A DNA stretch of 64,000 bases, from positions 806,001-870,000 of the forward strand of contig OZ251253.1 of assembly GCA_965240325.2 (NCBI GenBank). Reading direction: 5' to 3'. The position numbers were made by a program, and so were the translations under genes. This document shows positions 25,066 through 41,076 of this stretch, piece after piece. The stretch comes from Rebecca billardiae RCC1528 (Eukaryota > Protista > Haptophyta). Under the pieces are notes generated by a model. The model had not been told where the DNA came from. It made no database searches and saw only the letters and a program-made list of their open reading frames with translations. Each line of letters starts with the position of its first letter. Position 1 is the stretch's first letter.

Positions 25066-25785
25066 CCGGGACAGTGACGAGGGACCGCGCGGCGCGCGCA
25101 CGACAAAAATCATCCCCCTCAAAATACTGCTGAATAATCAGAAAAGTCGAATAAATAAAGGCGCGCGAGTCCCAGCCAGGCGGTCCTCCCTCGGCCATGT
25201 CTTCCAGCGCCTCGCGTTCGCGAGGCGTGCCCGAAACAGCTACACACTCACCGGTGCCCTGGGGCACCGGCGCAACCCGCATCCAACACTCCGCATATCG
25301 CAGACACGACATATCCACCCGCGCTTGCACACGCACGCCCCCCCCCCCGCCTGCTTGCTGACCATGCAAGGACTGGCCCGGTGCGGACGCCAAGCGCATG
25401 CTCATCCCGACACGACGGCGAAGTGCGGAGGCACTGGGGAGCGACACGCGGAGTGTGGGCCGCCCTCCTTCCTGAGCAGCGCCCGGCCCTCAGGTGGAGA
25501 CCGCGCCCGTCCCGGCCTCCCCGCGGCGGCCGCGAGCCCCCCCCCCCCCCCTTCCCCATCCTGCCCGTTTCGCGACAAACCCCTCTCCCCCCGAAACGCA
25601 CGACGGGCCGCCGTGGTCCGGGGGACCGGCGGGGCCACTCCGGACCTGGGTTTTGAAATTTGATTTCAACCCCGCGCGCCGAAATGCCTTTGGCACCAGC
25701 ACCGACCTCGCTCGCACCGCAGTGCCCGCACCCGCCCCCCCCCCCCCCCCCCCTCCGCAGCCCCGCGCCCGCCACACCGGCTACC

Positions 25786-26889
25786 ATGCCCCCTTACGAG
25801 TACGGCGTGTTCCGCGACCGTCTCAACAGCAGGAGCGCCTTGACCTTCTTCCCCTCTTCCAGCAACTACGAGCGCGGGCTGCAGCTGGAACGGCCGAGCA
25901 CCCCCACCGCCAGGCGGGATGCGGGCCTGCAGATGTGCACGACGATGATCAAGCTGAGCGCGCGCTGCCTGAGCGACGTGGCGCCCAACTCGCAAGGCGG
26001 GCGACTGCTCGCAGGACTCACCCAGGACCCCAAAGGCAATAAGCACGTTTTCTCCTTCACCGGATCGGTGCTCGAGAACATGGCCATCTGCCGCCGCCTG
26101 GCCACCAGCCTGTGCATGCCGAACATTTTCACGGCGTGCACCACGGAGCTCACGCAGGAGATGCTCGCGCTGTCGGCGGCCGACCTCGCAACCCAGGCGA
26201 AGGACGTGTCCCTCACGCTCCCGGTTAGCCCCACGATGACGCTCGTGCAGTTCCACAGGGCCCTCTACGAGCAGATCGTGCCCGACATCAACAAGTACGT
26301 GACCAACGGTGAGCACGTCGAGACCAACATCTACTCCGGCGGTGTGAACCTGATCTTCCTCCGCCTCCGTTTCATGCCCATCGACCCCGAGCACCCCATC
26401 TTCTTCGCGCCGCTCAAGCCGAGCCGCCGCATCGCCGGCGCCGCCCGCGTCCCACACAACCTGTGGGGCGTGCCGCCCGCGCCGCCTGTGCCGCCCGCGC
26501 CGCCCGCCGCTGCGCGCCGCCCTGCTCCTCAGCCGGCCGACCAACAGGCGGCGGACCCCGCCGGCCCGGAGGCGGAGGAGCCCGAGGGGGAGGGTTCCGA
26601 CGATGCCATCCCGCCACCCCAGCCGCCAACCGCGGCCGCGCCGTCGGACGGGCCCGAGGTGCAACAGGCCAGGCCGGCGCTCGGGGAGTCCAACTACCGC
26701 CTGGTCCTGCCCCCCGGCGCCGCGGCAGCCGGCAAGCGCGCGGCGACCGAGCCGTCCACGCCGGCGGAGGAGGATGGGCCCTCCTCCGCTGGCGGGAGCG
26801 ACGCCAAGCCGGCCAAGCAGGCTCGCACCGCGTCCCTCGCCGACCCCCCCCGTGACCTGGCTGCCGCCGTGCCGCCGTCACTGGCGTAG
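25786..26889 (+). CDS. Orphan 367-aa protein of the 2.2-kb element (globular N-terminal ~215 aa, Pro/Ala-rich disordered tail)
   Basis: ATG in ACCATG context; intact and the same length in both copies; synonymous changes between copies in the central region. Confidence 0.8.
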   Translation: MPPYEYGVFRDRLNSRSALTFFPSSSNYERGLQLERPSTPTARRDAGLQMCTTMIKLSARCLSDVAPNSQGGRLLAGLTQDPKGNKHVFSFTGSVLENMAICRRLATSLCMPNIFTACTTELTQEMLALSAADLATQAKDVSLTLPVSPTMTLVQFHRALYEQIVPDINKYVTNGEHVETNIYSGGVNLIFLRLRFMPIDPEHPIFFAPLKPSRRIAGAARVPHNLWGVPPAPPVPPAPPAAARRPAPQPADQQAADPAGPEAEEPEGEGSDDAIPPPQPPTAAAPSDGPEVQQARPALGESNYRLVLPPGAAAAGKRAATEPSTPAEEDGPSSAGGSDAKPAKQARTASLADPPRDLAAAVPPSLA

Positions 26890-26949
26890 AGCCGCGCGCG
26901 GCGCTGGCGCGCCAGACGCGCCCGGTTGGGCAGCGCAGGCACCCTCAGC

Positions 26950-27080
26950 GGCCAGGACGACGACTTCCTCAACGGCAAGGGCGACGACTTCCTCTGCGGC
27001 CAGGGCGACGACTTCCTCAACGGCAAGGACGACGACTTCCTCAACGGCAAGGGCGACTACTCCCTCAACTCGGCAAGGCC
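26950..27080 (+). repeat. 5 x 24-bp repeat (GACGACTTCCTCAACGGCAAGGGC) in the 3' region of the element
   Basis: Direct repeats visible here and inverted at ~39165-39295. Confidence 0.9.
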
Positions 27081-27467
27081 ACTAGGCCGCGCACACCGGC
27101 CCGGGCGACCACATCCACTACCCGCACTACGGCATCAACTTGAACAGCCTCGGACGACGACGACGCGGGCAACTACATGATGACCAAGGCCGACGACGAC
27201 TGCAAAACAGCGGCATCCCCGGGCGCCTACTACCTCAGTGACCGTGTGATCAGCATCGGTTACGACGACTCCCTCACCCGCGGCCAACGCGCTCCAGCGA
27301 CATCCTCCATTAACTCCATTCAGTACTTCGACAGACGAATCAGGAGAGCTGCGCCCTCGTGCCTGTGTCTTTAAATCATAGAATTAGTCCGGGCGCTCGC
27401 GATCGACATTCTGAATTCGGCGGAGCATCCGCTCGCGAAAGGTCGGCGCCCCGATTCTGCTGCAAGG

Positions 27468-29399
27468 ATGGGCGCCGCCTCCTCCGCCGCCGCCGCCGCC
27501 GACGCGCCCGGCGGCGTCGACCCGCGCGCGGCGCTGCCGCTCGGCGCGCCGCCGCACGACCTCGCCGACGCCGCCGAGCTCGGCGCGCTCCGCGCCATCG
27601 GGCCGGGCGCGCGCGTGGGCGCGGCCGAGCGGCGGTGCGTGAGCCTGGCGCAGCTGGACGCGCTGTGGGCGGTCGTGCAGGCGCGCTGCGCGGCGGGGGG
27701 CTCGTGGTGGCACGTGGTGCGCGACGCGTCGGGCGCGGCGCTGCGGTACGAGCCGCGCACCCTCGACCCGGCCGCCGTCGACTGGTACCACGTGCACCAC
27801 ACGCTGCTGCTGCCCGCGACGCGGCCGCGCGGCTGCTCGGCCGCCGAGCTCTGGGGCGGCGGCGCGGGGCGCGACGGCGCGAGCGCCGAGTGGTACGTGG
27901 CGCACGCGTGGGCCGAGCCGTTCGCGCGCGTGCTCGCGTGCCTCCGCCAGCACGCCGCCGACCGCGGCTACCACGAGCACACGCCGCTCTGGCTCTGCGC
28001 CGCCGCGGCGAGCGCGCACGCGCCCGCCGACGTCGGGCTGCGCGCGCGCGCCGACCCGCGCGACGCGCCGTGGGCGCGCGCGCTCGCCGAGGCGCGCGGG
28101 CTGGTGCTCGTGCTCGGCGAGCCGGCGACGCTGTTCTCGCGCGCGTGGCCCGCGTACGAGCTCGCGCACGCCGTCGCCGCCGCGCCCGGCGGCACGCTCG
28201 TCGACTGCTACGCGCTGCTCGCGCGCGGCGGCGGCGGCGGCGGCGCGGGCGGCGGCGGCGCGGGCGGCGGCGGCGGCGGCGGCTTCGGCGTGGTCGGGCT
28301 GACCGACGGGCCGCTGGGCGCGGAGGGGCTGGACGGGCAGCGCGCGCGGCAGCGCGCGCTGGCGACGGACGTGCTCGGCCCCGCGCTCGCCTTCGACCTC
28401 GACGCCGCCGCCGCCTCCGCGCCCTCCGACGCTGCGCTGCTGCGCGCGGCCCTCTCCGAGTGGGCGGAGGGGCGCGCGCTCGGCGCCACGGTGCGCTCCT
28501 TCTTCGTCGCGGCGGCGCTGTCCGAGCTCGTGCGCACGGCGGGCGGGCGGTACCGGCTGGCGCACGCGCAGCTCGACGAGCTCGCCGCCTCGCAGCTGCG
28601 CGCCCTCCGCGCCGTGCTCGACGGCGCGCCCCCCGGCTGGGCGTGCGAGGCGCTGCTGCCGCGGCTGCCGCGCAGGCTGCAGGCGCTCGCGCTGCGCGGC
28701 GCGCGGCCGGCGCGCAGGCCGCCCGCGCTGCTCGGCGCGGCGGTGGGCGGCGGCGGCGTGGGCGCGGAGGACGTGGGCGCGCGCGTGGCGCGGTGGATCG
28801 GCGGCGCGGCGCGCGGCGGGCGCGGCGCGCCGCCCGCCCCGCCGCTGCGCGCGCTTACGCTCGTCGCGTGCGCCATCGACGACGGCGGCGCGGCCGCGCT
28901 CGCGCGCGCGCTGCCCTCGCTCGACACGTCGCTCGCGCTGCTCGACCTCTCGGGCAACCGGATCGGCGCGGCGGGGGCGGGCGCGCTGGCGGGCGCGGTG
29001 CGCGTGCACCTCTCGCTGCGCACGCTCGCGCTCGCGCGCAACCCGCTCGGCGACGACGGCGTCGCCGCGCTCGGCGCCGCGCTGCGGCTCAACTCGTCGG
29101 TAGCGTCCGCGCGGCTCGGCGGCACCGGCGCGGCCGAGCGCGGCGCGGCCGCGCTCGCCGAGGCGCTGCGCGTGAACGCGAGCCTGCGCGTGCTCGACGT
29201 GTCGCAGAACCGGATCCCCGCGCGCGGCGTGGTCGCGCTCGCCGACGCGCTCGGCGCCAACACCGCGCTCGACGCGTGCTACGTGGGCGCCAACCCCCTG
29301 GGCACGGAGGGGCGGCGCGCGGTGCGCGAGGCGTGGCGCGCCAAGGACGCGCGGCTGCTCAACGTGGTGCCCAGCGCGCTGCACGCCGACGCGGCCTGA
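27468..29399 (+). CDS. HET/TIR-like N-terminal domain plus RNI-type leucine-rich repeats (NLRC3-like LRRs)
   Basis: WYVAHAWAEPF..LWLCA..LFSRAWPAYEL resembles the SHxW...RxWCxxE pattern of HET-like domains. C-terminal repeats LDLSGNRIGAAGAGALA, LALARNPLGDDGVAALG and LDVSQNRIPARGVVALA. MGAASS is a possible myristoylation site. Confidence 0.8.
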   Translation: MGAASSAAAAADAPGGVDPRAALPLGAPPHDLADAAELGALRAIGPGARVGAAERRCVSLAQLDALWAVVQARCAAGGSWWHVVRDASGAALRYEPRTLDPAAVDWYHVHHTLLLPATRPRGCSAAELWGGGAGRDGASAEWYVAHAWAEPFARVLACLRQHAADRGYHEHTPLWLCAAAASAHAPADVGLRARADPRDAPWARALAEARGLVLVLGEPATLFSRAWPAYELAHAVAAAPGGTLVDCYALLARGGGGGGAGGGGAGGGGGGGFGVVGLTDGPLGAEGLDGQRARQRALATDVLGPALAFDLDAAAASAPSDAALLRAALSEWAEGRALGATVRSFFVAAALSELVRTAGGRYRLAHAQLDELAASQLRALRAVLDGAPPGWACEALLPRLPRRLQALALRGARPARRPPALLGAAVGGGGVGAEDVGARVARWIGGAARGGRGAPPAPPLRALTLVACAIDDGGAAALARALPSLDTSLALLDLSGNRIGAAGAGALAGAVRVHLSLRTLALARNPLGDDGVAALGAALRLNSSVASARLGGTGAAERGAAALAEALRVNASLRVLDVSQNRIPARGVVALADALGANTALDACYVGANPLGTEGRRAVREAWRAKDARLLNVVPSALHADAA

Positions 29400-30201
29400 G
29401 CATGCGGGGGCGGGGGCGGGAGGGGCGGGGCGGCGGGAGGGCGGCGGGGCGGCCCCGCCCGCCGCGGGCCGCCGCAGCCCGCGCGCGGCGCCGCGCTCGC
29501 GCCAGCGCGCGCCGCGAGCAGCATCCGCATCGGCACCGTCGCTGTCGCCGCGGCGTCCGCAGCGGCGCAGCGCGCGCAGTGCACGCGCACCGCCGCACGG
29601 CACGAAGCGCCTACGGGGCTTGCGCGGGCGGGCAGCCGGCATGGCTCACGTGCGCCGCCCCCGGGGGCGCTGCGCCCGACAGCCGTCTCGTTAAGGTCTC
29701 GTTGAGGCGACGGCCGGCTGACGACGCGCTGGCTGACGTCTGGCGACGGCGTGGCAGCGCGCCCAGCGCGGGGTGGCGCGCACGCGTCGACGCCGCGGAC
29801 GGTGCGCCGGGCTGTGCTCGGCGATGGAGTGATATGGGGGGAAAGTGCGAGGCGACTGCGCGCTGCGCTTGAGTGCGCTGGCACCGTCCGTCGGATGCAA
29901 TACTTGCATGCGCGGTGTTCGTCCCGCTGACTGTACGCGACGCGACGACTGATAGCGCATGACGATATAGAATTCCACACGCGCCTGCCGTGCATCACTG
30001 CTTATATATAAACTGTGCCCTGGCGGGCGGGGGGGTCGGCGGGCCGTGCCAGTGCTGTCGCAATGTATCCTTTGCGGGTTCGCGTCTTTCCACATTCGCT
30101 CGTGGCCGTGGGTTACGGACAGTCGAGTGCAAGGACCAGTGATGACACGTGAAGTTGGCTCCCCGACGTGTGACACGTCTCAGTCTGTACTCTTATGCGC
30201 A

Positions 30202-30749
30202 TCAGCGAGGCCCACACCCTGACACCCACGAGGGAATGTGCAGCACGCGGGGCGGGGCGGGTAGCCCGTTGCTCCGCGCGAGCGCGGGTACGCACTGTAT
30301 GTGCCGCATCTCGACCGCGATGGCGTAATCGAGCGCCTCGCCGCCGACGAAGCCGCCAGAGTAGATCATGTGCATGTCCTCCTGCCGCCAGCCGAGAGCG
30401 GTCGTCGCGAGGATGCTTGCCGATGTCTGCTCCGGGCATGATGGGCTCGGCGCAGGTCGCGTTGGCGTCGTGCACGGCTGCCACGCTGAGCACGAGCGCG
30501 TTGACGTTCGCGCGGTCGTCGCTCTTCGCCTCGTGCGACAGGTCTGGCGCCTGCGTGTTCGGCGGCACAAGGAGCTGTTGGTTGTGCGCGCGCGCGCACA
30601 GCGACAGCGTGTGCCACTCGCGATCGAGAGTGGGCACGAGCTGCTCGAGCAAACACACGATTCGCAGCGCATCCATCACCGGCGTGACGACGTCCGCCTC
30701 GTCCCGCAGCGCCTGCGCCATGGACGAGGATGGCGCGGCGATATTGCAT
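30202..30749 (-). pseudogene. Degenerate, frameshifted ankyrin-like coding remnant
   Basis: ALDYAIAVEMRHIQCVPALA and NVNALVLSVAA..CAEPIMPGADI lie in different frames; TpG/CpA-rich decayed composition. Confidence 0.3.
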
Positions 30750-31573
30750 GCTCGACGTCCCGTCTCTCTGCAGATGGCATCACGGGCTTGTCTGTGTCGC
30801 GCTGCGGCGAGGGTCGCCAACTCGCGATGACGCGGTTGCTGCCACGGCGACAGACCCGGGAGGTGCGTCCGCTGCGCGTCGTACGCCGTTGGCGCTGCGC
30901 TTCCGTCGCATTGGTCACCGTCGACGCCATGCAGGCCGGACGTGGGCTTCGGCGAGGGACCGGACCGCGAGCAATGACCGAGTCCGGTGCGCGGATTCCG
31001 GCGATCGAGTTCACGGAAGGCCGCGCCAAATCTTGCGTCGCGTGCGATGGCGCTTCCCGCCCGCGAGACGCCTCGTGATGAGGGCTTTCTCGCACCGAGC
31101 CCGACGCGCGACGGTGGATCGCGCGAGGCGGTCATCGTGCGCAGCGCATGATGCTATGGCCGGTGCGAGCTTTCGACGTGCACGTCGGGCGAGGATCGCC
31201 CCAAGTCGCACGATCGTGTCGACGCGCCGAGCGTACCGCATCAAACGGGTCGATTTGGGCCCCGTTCGACCTGCACGCGAGACGACGAGGGCAGCAATCG
31301 CGAATCGGGCGAAAACGCGTCTAGGGAATCCTCGCGCGATGTCCGCGCCGGCGTTGGATTCGGCGCGCGCGGCCCACGCGCTCCGCGCCAGGCGCCATAT
31401 GGTTTTCGGCCGAGCGTCCCCAGTGGGAGCTGCGAGGGCGCCCGGTAGTGAGCGAAGCGACCCGGCAGTGAGCGGGCGATTTTCTTTTCTACTTTGCGAG
31501 GCGATTTTCTTTTTTCCTTTTCTTTTTCTTATCTTTTTCCCGGGCACTACAAGGGGCGGACCTACGGCCCGCC

Positions 31574-31578
<5 letters not shown>

Positions 31579-31643
<65 letters not shown>
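31579..31643. repeat. (TA)n microsatellite
   Basis: About 32 TA units. Confidence 0.98.
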
Positions 31644-31647
<4 letters not shown>

Positions 31648-34322
31648 TAATGTCAGCTGTATTGCCGTTTTGGAAAGTGTGGTCAGGTGTATTGCCAAAC
31701 GCACGTTTTGACTACCGTGGTCAGTTGTATTGCCGTTTTCCATGTTTGGGAATCACGTGTCAATCTTGTTGCCAACGTCGAATACTTGTGTCAGGTGTAT
31801 TGCCGTGGATGATGGCCCAATACTTTGTCCAGCTGTATTGCCGTCGCGTAGTGTGGGTCAGTTGTGTTGCCGTTTGCGCATCTTTGATTCAGGTTTGTTG
31901 CCGCGATCGCCCACGCGCTGATGATGGCGCTGGCGCCCACGCGCCGCCGGCGTGCGCGGCGTGCCCTTGAGCAGGCCTAGCTGATCCCAGGCCAGAAGAG
32001 TGGCGTTCAACGACGACGATCTCTGCCGGGGTAGCGCCGTGTTCCTCCACATCATCAAGCCGAGCGACGAGCTGAACCGTGGACCGGAATCTGCACAAAC
32101 GCTGCCGCATGCGCGCGCAGTGCAACACGCGCGTGCACCTCGGGCTACTCGCCGTCTACGCGGAGACGGGCGAGAATCCGTCGCGACTTCTATCGAATCG
32201 GCGTTGCTCCGTGCTCACTTCGACTCCGGGACCGTCAAGCGCGCAGTCGATGACATTGCGACGGCAGCGCATGCAGGTGCATGCGTGAAGCAGGGTGAGC
32301 GTGTGTTGCTGCGCCCCGATTCGCGGGAGTCGAACGTGCACGACGGGCGTGTGCTCTTCAACGGCCTCAAGGAGCTTGACCAACGCGACGCGCGTCCCTC
32401 TCACTGCCTGCCATCGACTGTCATTCACACCGTGGCGATCAACCAACGCGCGTCGCTCTCGCTCGTGCAACACTGCTGGCGCGTGCCTTTTTGCGATTGT
32501 CATCACTCCAACAGCAGACTGCCCTGTGGCCAACCGTGTGCAGGTGGCTGACCGTGCGCCAGTCGCACTCGTCAACGCAGGCTGATTGGCCCGTGGAGGA
32601 GGAAGTCCAAGGCGTACTGCCAGCTGGGACACAACGCACCGACCGGCGGGCGGTGCGCCGCGCGCGCCTCGACGAGCCAGCAAGCAGGAGGGGCAGGCGA
32701 CGCTTCCTGCTGCTGCTGGAACCCGAGTGGCAGGCTTGGCGAGCGCGGTCGCAGCTTGAGGCGGCGCGTGCAGCGGCATGGGACGCGATGCGGCTCACGT
32801 GGCCGCTGAAGTAGCAGCAGTCCCGATGGCGCTGGCGGCCGGCCGCCGGCGGGCGGCAAGCGCGACGGCGACGGGAAGCGCCGACTGCTACTGGAAGTCA
32901 AGATGAGCTACGCAGGCCGCATGATGATGGCATGTCGGTTGGTTGCTGTCGCGTATCCTGCATGCCGCGCGCAGGCAGTCGCAGCTCTGCACGCACGCGC
33001 ACACGGGCTGCGCGAGTCTCTTGTCTGAGTGCGAGTTGTGCCCCAGCCATGAGCTGCTGGCGGCAATACAACTGACACATAGTTATGGAAAGGGCAATAT
33101 TTCTGAGCAGACTATGTTCAAGCTCGAAAACGGCAATATTCGTGAACCAAGTACTGTGAAAGGGTCATTGGTTTGAAACCAGTATTTGAGGGGCAATATT
33201 GTTGACACACTATCCAAAAGCGGCAATATTCTTGACCCATACTACTGAAAACGGCAATACAACTGATACCTGGTGGATTTTCAGCCACCGGGATTCGGAC
33301 ATTTCGACTTAGGCGAGACGGCGAGCACCGAACCGTTTCCCTTAAGAAGAGCTGTACCCACCTGGTCGCATTGCACTATTCACGCGGCGCCTTCTGGGGC
33401 TTCGTGTCATTTTTGAGACTAGGACTTCTGAGCGGCTGTGAGTACTGTCGTTGTTCAGAGAGCACGAGCAAGGAATCCAAGTTGGAGCCGCCCCATAGTC
33501 AAGGCCCATCGAAAACGGCGCGGCTCGGGCGGAATCTTACCTGTGAAGCGTGTTTCCAATAGTGTCCGCCACGCCGCCGCCGTGATGAAGGTATAAGGAG
33601 AACGGCGCGGCCCGTATTGGGTTTCGGACGGAATCTTACCTGTGAAGCGTATTTGCAATTAGTGTCCGCCACGCCGCCGCCATGAAGAAGGTAAGCTCCT
33701 TACCTTCTTCATGGCGGCGGCGCCACGCCGCCGCCATGAAGAAGGTAAGCTCCTTACCTTCTTCATGGCGGCGGCGTGGCGGACACTAATTGCAAATACG
33801 CTTCACAGGTAAGATTCCGTCCGAAACCCAATACGGGCCGCGCCGTTCTCCTTATACCTTCATCACGGCGGCGGCGTGGCGGACACTATTGGAAACACGC
33901 TTCACAGGTAAGATTCCGCCCGAAACCCAATACGAGCCCCGCCGTTTGCGGCCTAGCGGGGCGCATCTCTTTGCAGCAAAACACGCTTCACGCGCCGTTT
34001 TCGATGGGCCTTGACTATGGGGCGGCTCCAACTTGGATTCCTTGCTCGTGCTCTCTGAACAACGAAAGTACTCACAGCCGCTCAGAAGTCCTAGTCTCAA
34101 AAATGACCCGAAGCCCCAGAAGGCGCCGCGTGAATAGTGCAATGCGACCAGGTGGGTACAGCTCTTCTTAGGGCCAAACGGTTCGGTGCTCGCCGTCTCG
34201 CCTAAGTCGAAATGTCCGAATCCCGGTGGCTGAAAATCCACCAGGTACCACGGTAGTCATAACGTGCTTTTGGCAATACAACTGACCACACTATCCAAAG
34301 CGGCAATACAACTGACGTCGGC

Positions 34323-34324
<2 letters not shown>
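31644..34324. mobile_element. Non-autonomous long-TIR element with GAG...CTC ends (MULE- or Sola-like, superfamily unresolved)
   Basis: Left end gagataatgtcagctgtattgccgttttggaaagtgtggtcaggtgtattgccaaacgcacgttttgactaccgtgg matches the reverse complement of 34248-34324. GTATTGCC is repeated on the left and GGCAATA on the right (33060-33266). The interior is decayed coding-like DNA. Confidence 0.85.
33269..34245. mobile_element. 977-bp foldback (almost entirely palindromic) element inserted in the right TIR of the GAG element
   Basis: CCTGGTGGATTTTCAGCCACCGG... and ...CCGGTGGCTGAAAATCCACCAGG form ~400-bp inverted arms; TA on both sides (33267-33268, 34246-34247). Confidence 0.9.

Positions 34325-34381
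<57 letters not shown>
34325..34381. repeat. (TATC)n microsatellite
   Basis: Seen directly in the sequence. Confidence 0.98.
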
Positions 34382-35236
34382 GACCCGTTGCACGCGTGAG
34401 CGCCGAAAAAACGACACTTTGGCAGTGATAGTCATCACCGTCGCCGCATCGTGGGCATGCCGCTGCCGCCGCCGGCGGCGGCAGCGGGAGCGTAGCAGCA
34501 GATCTACCACCTTCCGCGTTACGCGCTGCGTCGTGCGCGCCAGGTGGCAGGTTTCCCAGGTCCGCCGCGCGGAAGGCAGCGTGAGCGGTCGGCGAGCGCA
34601 CGGAGGTGAGAAGTAAGCGCGCATCGTGAGAGCTTCAGCAGCTTGCCCACGCGCTTCACGAAGGCGGTGCGGTTGCGTGCGCACGCCTTCTGTACCCGTA
34701 CACGCGATCAAAGCGTGAGCCACTCCCTAGGTCTTGCCTGCGCATCGCGGGCCGCGCCTCGTCTCCTGAATCCTCGTTTACGAGGACAGCACGTGTATCT
34801 GTGTACGCGCTCGCGGCCGATGGCGGCTCCCCGCGTCGAGAGCCGTTTGGCTGGAGCCGCATCCAAGGGCATATATCGTCACGGCCCCACCCGATGCTGA
34901 CGCTGAGGTGGCGTGCTTGCCGAAGGTAGCCGCATTGGCTGATCTCTCTGCCTTTGGGCAACCCTTTGCAACCGCGCCGGCTCACGCTGCCAGCGCGCGC
35001 GCGGCGTGGCTTCGTGGTGGACACCTGCCCTGGGTTTTGTCGTTCGTTCTCAGCGACGGTTGGGTCGATTGACATGCGGATTGGATTGGTGCATTGCGAA
35101 TCGGCTTCGCAATGCACCATTGCGCTCGGATCGGCGCGGACGTCAGCCATGCGGCAGCGCGAGCGACAAAACCGCGAGATTTCATACGCTTGTCGTTTTT
35201 TCATACGCTCACGGTTACTCACCCGTGCAACGGGTC
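34382..35236 (-). mobile_element. 858-bp TIR element, copy 2 (855 bp, inverted)
   Basis: Reverse complement of 7331-8188 with a few substitutions and a 3-bp indel; same TIRs. Confidence 0.9.
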
Positions 35237-35711
<475 letters not shown>

Positions 35712-35975
35712 CCGCCGCATCCATAGCGGCTGACCCTACTTGGGGCTCTGTGGAGTGTGGGACACTTCGGGCGTTCATTCGATCGGCCGCAGGAATGCGC
35801 GACGAAGATCGTTTTCGGCACTACGCCCGGTTTCTACATGAGCGGACTGGCAGGGCCAGGGGTCAACCGGAGGCCAGAGCCGCGGCGCGATCACGCCAGC
35901 ACGCAGCCTCCGGGTGGGCACCGCCGCCCCGGCGAGGCAGCAACGCCCGCGCCGTCGTCGAGATCGCGCATGCGG

Positions 35976-37544
35976 TCAGCCGTAGTAGGGTGCGCCCGGG
36001 CCGTACGGCGGAGGCGGCGCGCCCGGCGCGCGCGGCGGCGCGGGCCACGGCGGCGCCCACGGCTGCGGCGGCGGCTGCTGGTGCGCGGGCGGCGCCGCCC
36101 CGTACGGCGCGCGCGGGTGGTGCGCTGCGGGCCACGGAGCGGGGCCGCCGGCCGCGGCCGCCGCGCGCGGGTAGTGCCACTGCGGCGGCGGCTGCGCGTA
36201 CGGCGCGTGCGGCGCCGCGCCCGCCATCGCGCCGGGCGGCGCGCGCGCGTACGGCATCGGCGGCGCCGGGCCGGGGCCGGGCGCGTGCGGCGGCGCGTAC
36301 GGCGGGGGGGCGGCCCCCCAGCACCCAGGGGCGGGCGGCGCGGCGGCGACGTGCCACCCGGGGCCCGGCGGCGGCTGCGGCGCCCACGGCGCGGGCGGGT
36401 AGGGCCGCGCCGGCGGCGCCGCGCCCGGCGGCGGCCGCCAGCCGGCGGCGCAGCACGCGGCCGGCGGCCGGCGCACGCCCGGCGGCGCGCCGAGCGCGGC
36501 GGCCGCGCGCGCGGCGCCGCGCATGCCGCCGCCGCCGCCGCCGCCGCGCGCGCCGCGCGGCGGGCGCTTGTGCACGCCCGGCGGGCCGCCCGCCGCGCCG
36601 CGCCCCGCGCCGCGTGACGGCGGCCCCGCTAGGCCACCGCGCGCGCCGCCGCGTGCCGGGACGGGGCCGTGGCCGCGGCCGCGCCGCGCGCCGCCGCGCG
36701 CGCCGCGGCCGCGCTCCGCGCCGCGCCCGCGCGCCGCGGCGGGCTGCGGCGGCGCGGCCGGCGGCAGCGGCGCGGGCGGCAGGCCGGGGGGCAGCGGCGC
36801 GGGGCCCGCGCGCGGCCCCGCGACGAGCGCGTCGCGCCCCTTGGTCCACGCCGGCGGCGGCGCGCCGCCCGCGTGCGCGCCGCCCGCGGCGTGCGCCGCC
36901 GCCGCCGCCGCCTCCGCCGCCGCCTCCTCCGCGGCCGCGCCCTGCCGCACCGCGCGGCCGCTCGCGCGGAAGCGCTTGATGATGCCGATGAGGAAGCCCG
37001 TCTTGTTCGCCACGTGCGTGAGGTCCTGGTTGGCCATCCGCGCCACGATCTCGCAGCCCGTCGGCGCGTCGAAGTCGTTGAGCGAGCGCAGCGCGCCGTC
37101 GGCCACGTCCGCGCGCGCCACGCGGCCGAGGTTGAAGAGGCCCTCGAGGGCGAGCCGCACGGCGGGCGCGGTGCGCGGCAGGCCGTACGGGTTGGGCTCG
37201 GCGTCGTCGGGCTCGTGCGACGCGGGCGCGGCCGCGGGCGCGGCTGGCGCGTCGTCGCCGGCGGCGCCCTCCGGCTCGTCCTCGTCCTCGTCCTCGTCCG
37301 TGTCGTCATCGTCGTCATCGTCGTCGTCCTCCTCCTCGTCGTCCTCCTCCTCCTCCTCCGCCTCCTCCTCCTCCTCCTCCTCCTCCTCCGCCTCGCCCTC
37401 GCCCTCGTTATGCTCGCCGTCTTCGTTCTCATCACCGCCATCCCAGTCCGCGTCGCCCTCGCCCTCGCCCTCCGCCTCCTCCTCCGCCTCCTCCTCCTCC
37501 TCCTCCTCCTCCTCCTCCGCGTGGCCCTGCTCGCTGGCCGCCAT
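35976..37544 (-). CDS. Acidic N-terminus, hnRNP Q/R NURR (acidic domain)-like domain, RGG and Pro/Tyr low-complexity tail; putative RNA-binding protein
   Basis: [48 protein letters not shown] parallels hnRNP Q DLSHVQNKSAFLCGVMKTYR; ATG at 37544. Confidence 0.8.
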
Positions 37545-37659
37545 CGTGGCTGATGACTCCCAGCCGACGACGGCTTTGCCGCTTTGCACTGGGCCAGTGG
37601 CTGACGAATCTTCGGTGCCGTTCGGAGAGCGGCGGTCGCGGCCTGCTCGCACGGCGCTA

Positions 37660-38322
37660 ATGACGATGACGACGACCACGCTCGCCGTCGCGGCGCTCGC
37701 GCTCGGCGCGCTCTCGGCGGCGGAGGCGTGGCGCGCGGGCGCGCCCGCCCCGGCGGTGCGCGGCTCCGCTCTCGCCCGCCGCCGCGCGGCCCTCCGCCCC
37801 GCGCCGCGCATGGACGAGGGCGCCGAGTGGGTGGGCGCGCAGCAGCACTCGGAGGCGTCCAAGGACACGGACACGGTCTTCGGCATCGAGCGGATCATGG
37901 AGATCCTGCCGCACCGGTATCCGTTCCTGCTGGTGGACAAGGTGATCGAGTTCGAGCCGGGCAAGCGCTGCGTCGGCGTCAAGAAGGTGACGATGAACGA
38001 GCAGTTCTTCACCGGCCATTTCCCGAACCGTCCGATCATGCCGGGCGTGCTGCAGGTCGAGGCGATGGCGCAGGTGGGCGGGCTGGTGGCGCTGCAGGAG
38101 CCGGTGAGCGACGCGGGCGGCGGGAAGGGCGACTTCTTCTTCGCCGGCGTGGACAACATCCGCTGGCGCCGCCCCGTCGTGCCGGGCGACACGCTCGTGA
38201 TGGAGATGGAGCTCGTCTCGTTCAAGGCGCGCTTTGGGATCGTCAAGATGAAGGGCAAGGCGTTCGTCGACGGGAAGCCCGCCGTCGACGGCGACTTCAC
38301 CTTCGCGCTGGTCAAGGAGTAA
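37660..38322 (+). CDS. fabZ: Plastid-targeted 3-hydroxyacyl-ACP dehydratase
   Basis: [37 protein letters not shown] and RRPVVPGD; signal peptide ending AEA-W followed by an Arg/Ala-rich transit peptide. Confidence 0.96.
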
Positions 38323-38855
38323 GGTGGGGGCGTGCTCGGCATGGCGAGCAGCCGCCGCGGCCGCGGCGGTGCCCGTCGCGTCGCGCGCAGCAGTCCGGCC
38401 ATCAGCACTCGGCAGCGCCACGACCCGGCGCGCTGCATCAGTGATCGACTGACGAGTGCAGCAGCCGTGATATGTGTGCAGGCGCGCGCCGTCACTGGCG
38501 TCAGCAGGCTGATCATATATATATAATAAGCAGCACGACGACGCGTACCGTTGATGTTGCTGACTATGATGAGCGCTGCTGATCGGATATATGATATATA
38601 GCGTCGTCATCAGTCAGAATTATATAACTCTGAATTCCGGATGATCGTCAATATATGAAGCAGCGCTGACGAATTATCGTCGTCGCGGACGCGATCAGAC
38701 GGGCGATCCACTCACTGCGATTCGTCAGGCTGTGAGTGTGGATTCAGTCGTCATTCAATTTCATCAGGCAAGCGCTAGCCGAAGTAGCCTGCTACCGCCG
38801 CGTAGTGCCCGACTGATATTAGGGGGTCCAAGCCGCGGAATTAAAAATCGAAAAT

Positions 38856-41076
38856 CCGGACTAATTCTATGATTTAAAGACACAGGCACGAGGGCGCAGC
38901 TCTCCTGATTCGTCTGTCGAAGTACTGAATGGAGTTAATGGAGGATGTCGGAGCGCGTTGGCCGCGGGTGAGGGAGTCGTCGTAACCGATGCTGATCACA
39001 CGGTCACTGAGGTAGTAGGCGCCCGGGGATGCCGCTGTTTTGCAGTCGTCGTCGGCCTTGGTCATCATGTAGTTGCCCGTGTCGTCGTCGTCCGAGGCTG
39101 TTCAAGTTGATGCCGTAGTGCAGGTAGTGGATGTGGTCGCCCGGGCCGGTGTGCGCGGCCTAGTGGCCTTGCCGAGTTGAGGGAGTAGTCGCCCTTGCCG
39201 TTGAGGAAGTCGTCGTCCTTGCCGTTGAGGAAGTCGTCGCCCTGGCCGCAGAGGAAGTCGTCGCCCTTGCCGTTGAGGAAGTCGTCGTCCTGGCCGCTGA
39301 GGGTGCCTGCGCTGCCCAACCGGGCGCGTCTGGCGCGCCAGCGCCGCGCGCGGCTCTACGCCAGCGACTGCGGCGCGGCGGCAGCCAGGTCACGGGGGGG
39401 GTCGCCGAGGGACGCGGTGCGAGCCTGCTTGGCCGGCTTGGCGTCGCTCCCGCCAGCGGAGGAGGGCCCATCCTCCTCCGCCGGCGTGGACGGCTCGGTC
39501 GCCGCGCGCTTGCCGGCTGCCGCGGCGCCGGGGGGCAGGACCAGGCGGTAGTTGGACTCCCCGAGCGCCGGCCTGGCCTGTTGCACCTCGGGCCCGTCCG
39601 ACGGCGCGGCCGCGGTTGGTGGCTGGGGTGGCGGGATGGCATCGTCCGAACCCTCCCCCTCGGGCTCCTCCGCCTCCGGGCCGGCGGGGTCCGCCGCCTG
39701 TTGGTCGGCCGGCTGAGGAGCAGGGCGGCGCGCAGCGGCGGGCGGCGCGGGCGGCACAGGCGGCGCGGGCGGCACGCCCCACAGGTTGTGTGGGACGCGG
39801 GCGGCGCCGGCGATGCGGCGGCTCGGCTTGAGCGGCGCGAAGAAGATGGGGTGCTCGGGGTCGATGGGCATGAAACGCAGGCGGAGGAAGATCAGGTTCA
39901 CACCGCCGGAGTAGATGTTGGTCTCGACGTGCTCACCGTTGGTCACGTACTTGTTGATGTCGGGCACGATCTGCTCGTAGAGGGCCCTGTGAAACTGCAC
40001 GAGCGTCATCGTGGGGCTAACCGGGAGCGTGAGGGACACGTCCTTCGCCTGGGTTGCGAGGTCGGCCGCCGACAGCGCGAGCATCTCCTGCGTGAGCTCC
40101 GTGGTGCACGCCGTGAGAATGTTCGGCATGCACAGGCTGGTGGCCAGGCGGCGGCAGATGGTCATGTTCTCGAGCACCGAGCCGGTGAAGGAGAAAACGT
40201 GCTTATTGCCTTTGGGGTCCTGGGTGAGTCCTGAGAGCAGTCGCCCGCCTTGCGAGTTGGGCGCCACGTCGCTCAGGCAGCGCGCGCTCAGCTTGATCAT
40301 CGTCGTGCACATCTGCTGGCCCGCATCCCGCCTGGCGGTGGGGGTGCTCGGCCGTTCCACCTGCAGCCCGCGCTCGAAGTTGTTGGAAGAGGGGAAGAAG
40401 CTCAAGGCGCTCCTGCTGTTGAGACGGTCGCGGAAAAAGCCGTGCTGGTAAGGGGGCATGGTGGCCGGTGTGGCGGGCGCGGGGCTGCGGAGGGCCGGGG
40501 GGCGGGTGCGGAAGCACTGCGGTGCGAGCGAGGTCGGTGCTGGTGCCAAAGGCATTTCGGCGCGCGGGGTTGAAATCAAATTTCAAAACCCAGGTCCGGA
40601 GTGGCCCCGCCGGTCCCCCGGACCACGGCGGCCCGTCGTGCGTTTCGGGGGGAGAGGGGTTTGTCGCGAAACGGGCAGGATGGGGAAAAGGGGGGGGGGG
40701 GGGGGGGGGGGGGGGGGCTCGCGGCCGCCGCGGGGAGGCCGGGACGGGCGCGGTCTCCACCTGAGGGCCGGGCGCTGCTCAGGAAGGAGGGCGGCCCACA
40801 CTCCGCGTGTCGCTCCCCAGTGCCTCCGCACAGGCACACCGCAGGTGTTCGCCGTCGTGTCGGGATGAGCATGCGCTTGGCGTCCGCACCCGGGGCCAGT
40901 CCTTTCATGGTCAGCAAGCAGGCGGGGGGGGGGCGTGCGTGTGCAAGCGCGGGTGGATATGTCGTGTCTGCGATATGCGGAGTGTTGGATGCGGGTTGCG
41001 CCGGTGCCCCAGGGCACCGGTGAGTGTGTAGCTGTTTCGGGCACGCCTCGCGAACGCGAGGCGCTGGAAGACATGG
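38856..41076 (-). mobile_element. 2.2-kb repeated element, copy B (inverted)
   Basis: Reverse complement of 25195-27392. Confidence 0.85.
39356..40459 (-). CDS. Orphan 367-aa protein, copy B
   Basis: Intact paralog of 25786-26889 with about 14 amino-acid differences. Confidence 0.8.
   Translation of the reverse strand: MPPYQHGFFRDRLNSRSALSFFPSSNNFERGLQVERPSTPTARRDAGQQMCTTMIKLSARCLSDVAPNSQGGRLLSGLTQDPKGNKHVFSFTGSVLENMTICRRLATSLCMPNILTACTTELTQEMLALSAADLATQAKDVSLTLPVSPTMTLVQFHRALYEQIVPDINKYVTNGEHVETNIYSGGVNLIFLRLRFMPIDPEHPIFFAPLKPSRRIAGAARVPHNLWGVPPAPPVPPAPPAAARRPAPQPADQQAADPAGPEAEEPEGEGSDDAIPPPQPPTAAAPSDGPEVQQARPALGESNYRLVLPPGAAAAGKRAATEPSTPAEEDGPSSAGGSDAKPAKQARTASLGDPPRDLAAAAPQSLA

Follow-up and report, generated by a model that had tools for sequence, protein, structure and literature searches.

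A 2.2-kb protein-coding repeat of Rebecca billardiae is probably a young, LINE-tailed, non-autonomous retroposon mobilised in trans

The stretch analysed here (hereafter the window) comprises 64,000 nt of Rebecca billardiae RCC1528 (assembly GCA_965240325.2, contig OZ251253.1, positions 806,001 to 870,000 of the forward strand). It contains two inverted copies, A and B, of a 2.2-kb repeat with an orphan open reading frame (ORF), which an earlier reading of the letters (the original prediction) had called unclassifiable. We give a probability of roughly 85% to the explanation that this element is a young, probably still active, non-autonomous retroposon without long terminal repeats (LTRs), which carries a tail derived from a long interspersed nuclear element (LINE) and is mobilised in trans. 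This reading is carried by the structure of its copies, by a series of 5' truncations in which the 3' end stays fixed, and by a tail in common with a LINE that encodes reverse transcriptase (RT).

The two units, predicted at window positions 25195-27392 (+) and 38856-41076 (-), were aligned from end to end by a repeat scan and pairwise alignment. Mean column identity between them was 96% when 100-nt flanks and indels were counted, and 98.4% when only substitutions were considered. The similarity broke off abruptly at either end, as predicted, but the sharp ends are not the true ends of the element; they merely mark the boundary (CCATG...) at which two subfamilies become alignable. Upstream of this boundary, each lineage has its own additional 5' leader of 10-45 nt. 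Subfamily 1 has ~23-43 further bases in common, and the leader of copy A is common to the copies L002-L006. Most subfamily 2 copies have a ragged leader of 10-15 nt in common, L012 and copy B have other leader variants, and in L028 and L029 the first 47 nt are replaced. All copies have a common 3' end, ...AATTRGTC, the last base of which is position 27389 in copy A; the next 1-3 bases vary, so that CGG at 27390-27392 can be assigned either to the element or to the flank. Terminal inverted repeats, LTRs and poly(A) were seen in neither window copy, while the two tight hairpins near the 5' end, the TTGAAAT/ATTTCAA palindrome and the array of five 24-bp repeats after the ORF were all present (Table 1), in agreement with the original prediction.

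We searched the 72-Mb, 41-contig, very GC-rich assembly for further copies. Hairpin 2 had 37 genome matches, 31 of them in full-length copies of the element, dispersed singly over many contigs, and 6 in a sister family described below. Thus, not just two copies with ragged ends were found, as a local inverted duplication of a host gene would leave, but 31 full-length ones. A six-frame search with ORF residues 1-215 gave 33 complete matches with open frames and a series of partial ones, and all 49 matches belonged to the element family or its deletion derivative. The 30 copies that were fetched fell into two main subfamilies, with mean pairwise identities of 99.85% and 99.93% within and 98.4% between subfamilies (substitutions only). 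By the same measure, copy A (subfamily 1) was 99.9-100% identical to L002-L006 on other contigs, with no substitutions relative to L003, and copy B (subfamily 2) was 100% identical to L012, L014, L015 and L022, also on other contigs. Since the window copies belong to different subfamilies and each has substitution-identical twins elsewhere, these comparisons indicate that they are independent and very recent insertions. The near-identity of copies also suggests ongoing activity.

Truncated copies started at element positions 229, 700, 905, 975, 1013, 1076, 1109, 1147, 1493, 2032, 2090, 2127 and 2135, and all of them ended at one common 3' end, at position 2195-2198. The six-frame search added a further truncation series with starts inside the ORF. 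A 23-nt motif of the 56-nt tail occurred 736 times in the genome with up to 2 mismatches, compared with 0 for the reversed control; there are more than 20 tails per full-length copy, and other families carry the tail as well. Head-to-tail arrangements were also found. In L017 a full copy is followed by its last 165 nt and then its last 70 nt, in L004 the last ~17 nt are repeated, and in L020 a stub from a different tail-bearing family abuts the 5' end on its upstream side. Two truncated copies lie in series at C38:442909-445578, and many 5' ends have short GTC-containing bits just upstream that resemble minimal head-to-tail stubs.

Several RT-bearing families are present in the genome, and no tail was found in the RT loci examined, each taken with 1.5 kb on either side. 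Among the matches listed, the only RT with a downstream tail on the same strand was C5:284276-285079 (+), which belongs to LINE family B. This family has a Pfam RVT_1 domain, and its nearest solved relatives in the PDB are R2 reverse transcriptases. Four members (L042-L045) were 99.2-99.8% identical, the 3.8 kb read forms one open frame, and the listed open frame is 2170 aa long; endonuclease-like and RNase H-like motifs picked out by eye in the LINE B fragment were not confirmed by Pfam. Exactly 10 genome copies, about 99% identical, were matched by a 400-nt probe that represents the end of L043. The link between LINE B and the tail was made from coordinates alone, with a tail pattern of 35 places that included 16 extra bases upstream. 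An identical tail (35/35 nt) on the LINE's strand was found for 5/5 LINE B copies on the contigs covered by the matches listed (to C12; Table 1). There are 257 such 35-nt tails in 72 Mb on two strands, and the expectation in a ~700-nt window is therefore ~0.001 per copy, indicating that five of five is not a chance result. The distances from probe to tail vary and imply a length polymorphism of up to 630 nt among copies in the 3' part of LINE B. As calculated from the length of the open frame, its stop codon is at least ~430 nt upstream of the tail. In the C5 copy, the tail (C5:289682-289716, +) is followed by a second, inverted tail (C5:290757-290791, -), 1 kb past the 3' end. No tail was found downstream of the two copies of the giant LINE family A that fall within the listed region (C1:2203319 and C5:109668); a third copy on these contigs is at C5:1899170, beyond that region. 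LINE B is thus the probable driver of the element, and as such would donate the enzyme.

The ORF and the 5' hairpin have no counterpart in LINE B. None of the six-frame matches to the ORF was close to a LINE B copy (10 copies), and 0/37 genome matches of hairpin 2 were at a LINE B copy. Since LINE B lacks both, the element is best described as a chimera, in which a private 5' module (two conserved hairpins, leader and orphan ORF) is joined to a borrowed LINE tail, and not as an internally deleted LINE.

Two further families carry the tail. The sister family (L031-L034, ~1.4 kb) is a deletion derivative without element positions 932-1651; it matches positions 3-931 at 66-78% and 1652-2195 at 83%, about 70% overall. 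Both hairpin stems are unchanged, the loops and surroundings differ, the 5' hairpin module is tandemly duplicated, and an ORF remnant of 110 residues is 43-45% identical to that of the element. Divergent ORF matches (37-44%) had been considered as RT-bearing relatives and were rejected; no RT adjoins them, their neighbours are WD40 and NUDIX host genes, and they represent this deletion-derivative family. Family X is SINE-like (SINE, short interspersed nuclear element) and ~190 nt long, with 422 candidate places in the genome and a fixed 5' end in 39/39 matches listed. It has only the last 56 nt in common with the element, at 89% identity, and no Rfam match.

We compared the flanks of the 30 copies for target-site duplications (TSDs). 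The longest match between 5' and 3' flanks averaged 4.97 nt for true pairs and 4.98 nt for mismatched pairs, and a 10-bp match was seen in L029 only; no TSD was thus detectable, as the original prediction had noted for the window copies. The insertion flanks were AT-richer than the surroundings, with 53-61% GC compared with 71% in DNA more than 700 nt away.

The orphan ORF of 367 aa was intact in both window copies. The three codon positions of residues 1-215 had GC contents of 0.56/0.46/0.91, which in this genome amounts to a strong sign of coding. This periodicity is informative, since long ORFs readily arise by chance in DNA so rich in GC; the element itself has one of 332 aa on the antisense strand. 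A Pfam search of the element gave no family at E <= 10, and hence no RT, endonuclease or recombinase, in line with the earlier failure to see DDE, RT, tyrosine-recombinase, HUH or RuvC motifs; the orphan ORF is the sole long sense ORF. Among PDB sequences, in the ESM Atlas and, by word-indexed search, among 5.8 billion proteins, no relatives of its protein were found. A HMMER search of 1.84 billion representatives likewise gave none, its two weak matches being repeat-inflated, with ~25% identity to unrelated proteins. An AlphaFold2 model of residues 1-225, based on a 4-row alignment, had a mean pLDDT of 38 and was unusable. The frame is kept in 25/30 copies, in keeping with their youth. Between subfamilies, there were 6.5 synonymous and 14.5 non-synonymous changes (ratio of non-synonymous to synonymous substitution rates, dN/dS, 0.77); private changes numbered 3 synonymous and 11 non-synonymous, and the comparison with the sister family gave a dN/dS of 1.7 over 108 codons. 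None of the three comparisons showed a sign of purifying selection, and in all of them numbers are small and dS is depressed by the extreme bias at third codon positions. The composition indicates that the ORF is a real coding sequence, which may or may not be of present use to the element. Downstream of it, window positions 26890-27372 contain coding-like pieces in shifting frames, namely 8-residue repeats and then a frame of ~73 codons that ends at a TAA inside the tail; this part may be what is left of an ORF, perhaps one that came from a LINE.

An Rfam search of the element at E <= 10 returned nothing, including no HDV-like (hepatitis delta virus-like) or hammerhead ribozyme, so such ribozymes do not explain the 5' hairpins. 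The hairpin stems are conserved yet never vary, and a structural role is thereby neither proved nor disproved.

Taken as a mechanism, these data are consistent with the following course. The element would be transcribed into an RNA ending in the 56-nt tail, with which the RT-encoding LINE B would end as well. The LINE enzyme would most likely recognise the tail or prime on it at a nicked chromosomal site, thereby copying the RNA into DNA (target-primed reverse transcription). Copying that often stopped early would leave the 5'-truncated copies, and an enzyme that sometimes went on to a second RNA, starting at the 3' end of the latter, would leave the head-to-tail stubs. End-to-end template jumping is established for non-LTR reverse transcriptases, and the partial head-to-tail copies may have arisen in this way. 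The different short 5' leaders of the source copies look like read-in from their flanks; lineage-specific leaders on an identical body are as would be expected of 5' transduction from different source loci. The claim of a non-autonomous family mobilised in trans thus gains support from the lack of an enzyme gene and from the tail in common with an RT-encoding LINE.

Several points weigh against this account. Transcription and the RNA intermediate are deduced from sequence only. The absence of TSDs is unusual for LINE insertion of the endonuclease type; TSDs are common in the LINE-dependent class without being universal, and some LINEs do without them. The tail identity with LINE B covers 35 nt only, and another LINE, e.g., family E (C10:917465), may also have the tail. 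In addition, the tail showed no significant fold (z = 0.84) and no compensatory pairs.

A retrogene swarm, in which a LINE made processed retrocopies of expressed source genes, one or a few in number, that end in the tail, with no self-propagating family, is the best surviving rival, and we consider it improbable. Host-like codon usage of the ORF (GC content at third positions 0.91), the lack of purifying selection between subfamilies or relative to the sister family (dN/dS 0.77 and 1.7), and near-identical copies, as few sources would give, are what such a swarm would show. However, no intron-bearing or divergent parent gene was present among the 49 six-frame matches, the existence of at least four leader lineages and of an older derivative family implies that daughter copies have propagated repeatedly, and the 5' hairpins were kept across ~30% divergence. 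Mobilisation at the DNA level, whether by an HUH enzyme of the Helitron-like, rolling-circle type or by a tyrosine recombinase, had been put forward in the original prediction and is very unlikely. The lack of TSDs, the tight hairpins near one end and the head-to-tail partial tandems would suit it, but the hairpins are found on the 5' and not on the 3' side, the termini do not have the form 5'-TC...CTRR-3', and no split or inverted terminal repeats, as a tyrosine recombinase would call for, are present; moreover, graded 5' truncation, a fixed 3' end and the LINE tail in 5/5 copies point to reverse transcription. Least credible of all is a local inverted duplication, or a composite in which the pair serves as giant inverted arms for the movement or inversion of the enclosed 11.5 kb. 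The copies are indeed inverted and 11.5 kb apart, and homologous recombination could in principle invert the interval. However, they represent different subfamilies, differ in their 5' leaders and have unrelated flanks, each resembles copies on other contigs more than it does the other arm, and the 31 full-length copies are dispersed singly, so that the pair falls as a unit.

Stringent LINE-SINE pairs consist of a LINE and a non-autonomous element whose 3' tail is that of the LINE (PMC5786205). As in these pairs, the element has no enzyme of its own, its tail is identical to that of a LINE of its own genome (35 nt compared), copies are 5'-truncated, tails are present in high copy number, and a true short family (X, ~190 nt) exists on the same tail. 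Unlike them, it is 2.2 kb long and protein-coding, has no small-RNA-derived head as examined with Rfam, and gave no detectable TSDs. Strict SINE features (short length; a tRNA, 5S or 7SL head; an internal RNA polymerase III promoter) therefore do not describe a 2.2-kb unit with an ORF and no Rfam match at E <= 10. HAL1 (half-L1) is an ORF1-only non-autonomous derivative of mammalian L1 (PMC5753468), and the element resembles it in being non-autonomous and LINE-dependent, with one intact ORF and no RT gene. However, the ORF of HAL1 is ORF1 of L1 itself, whereas the ORF and 5' hairpin module of our element are absent from every LINE B copy, and no ORF1 features could be recognised in its ORF, for which no relatives were found either. 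Accordingly, the earlier suggestion of an ORF1-only, HAL1-like retroelement holds as to the retroelement, given the truncation series, the single 3' end and the LINE tail, but not as to a strict HAL1 origin.

RIME/ingi and NARTc/L1Tc of trypanosomatids are pairs in which a LINE mobilises a non-autonomous, non-coding partner that shares both of its ends. The element likewise appears as a LINE-mobilised partner sharing terminal sequence; in contrast to these, it is coding, and only the 3' tail is common to the LINE, as far as testable. Helitrons have 5'-TC and 3'-CTRR termini, a hairpin that lies 10-20 nt before the 3' terminus and insertion into AT; the termini of the element are different, and its last 100 nt have no significant fold. 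The features of DIRS, Ngaro and PAT elements (split direct or inverted terminal repeats and an internal complementary region) were not seen, as the unit has no terminal repeats within it, and nor was the hammerhead ribozyme in terminal repeats of Penelope-like elements and retrozymes, for which Rfam gave no match.

Table 1. Positions of the element, its parts and related tail-bearing sequences. Positions without a prefix refer to the window; C and L prefixes denote contigs and loci of the genome-wide search.
Feature	Position	Strand	Remarks
Copy A, subfamily 1, full length	25172..27389	+	includes 23-nt lineage-specific 5' leader, 25172-25194
Copy B, subfamily 2, full length	38859..41076	-	divergent 5' leader probably reaches ~41095
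5' hairpin 1	25208..25227	+	9-bp stem, 2-nt loop; stem invariant, loop differs in sister family
5' hairpin 2	25251..25270	+	9-bp stem; marker of full-length copies
Orphan ORF, copy A (367 aa + stop)	25786..26889	+	residues 1-215 of ordinary composition; 216-367 a Pro/Ala/Glu-rich tail
Orphan ORF, copy B	39356..40459	-	intact; 96% identical to that of copy A
24-bp repeat array, 3' untranslated part	26919..27066	+	one frame gives 8-residue repeats; G/C at every third position
56-nt 3' tail, copy A	27334..27389	+	common to family X, deletion-derivative family and (35/35 nt) LINE family B
56-nt 3' tail, copy B	38859..38914	-	same tail as copy A
LINE B tail, C5	289716	LINE's strand	3137 nt downstream of probe
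LINE B tail, C8	3460587	LINE's strand	2927 nt downstream of probe
LINE B tail, C10	3305760	LINE's strand	2770 nt downstream of probe
LINE B tail, C11	2351741	LINE's strand	2940 nt downstream of probe
LINE B tail, C12	2232403	LINE's strand	3401 nt downstream of probe
Sister family members	L031:7594-9020, L032:7656-8979, L033:4861-6584, L034:7549-8306		without element positions 932-1651
Family X members	L023:4063-4250 (G000:C16:88478-88665), L020:3729-3919, L034:2172-2317		

Other features were observed next to and between the window copies. The LRR (leucine-rich repeat) gene of the original prediction, a 643-aa ORF in the same orientation as copy A, has its ATG (27468) 78 nt beyond the 3' end of that copy. 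A large, near-perfect palindrome occupies 33340-34173, with arms at 33525-33722 and 33726-33923 that are 98% complementary around a 3-nt spacer, and an outer pair at 33340-33522 and 33991-34173. The bracketed interval also contains a long (ATCT)n/(AGAT)n microsatellite, arranged as a palindromic block at 35117-35708, and an (AT)n run at 31574-31643.

A repeat that had been unclassifiable is thus resolved into an ordinary mechanism, and what is new is a candidate driver LINE. Of modest curiosity is the orphan ORF, well formed as a coding sequence but with neither relatives nor detectable constraint. One could imagine that its protein works as an RNA-binding or chaperone partner, standing in for an ORF1 protein absent from LINE B, which apparently has a single giant ORF, so that the two would form a split, mutually dependent two-component retrotransposon, or that the protein helps the element RNA to capture the LINE enzyme; we regard either as a long shot. 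The near-identical copies, if activity is indeed ongoing, would be useful as insertion-polymorphism markers. For genome annotators, the analysis defines one LINE-tail network, made up of LINE B, the 2.2-kb coding passenger, its ~1.4-kb derivative and the ~190-nt SINE-like family, which together account for more than 700 tail-bearing insertions, many of them in AT-richer DNA near gene starts.

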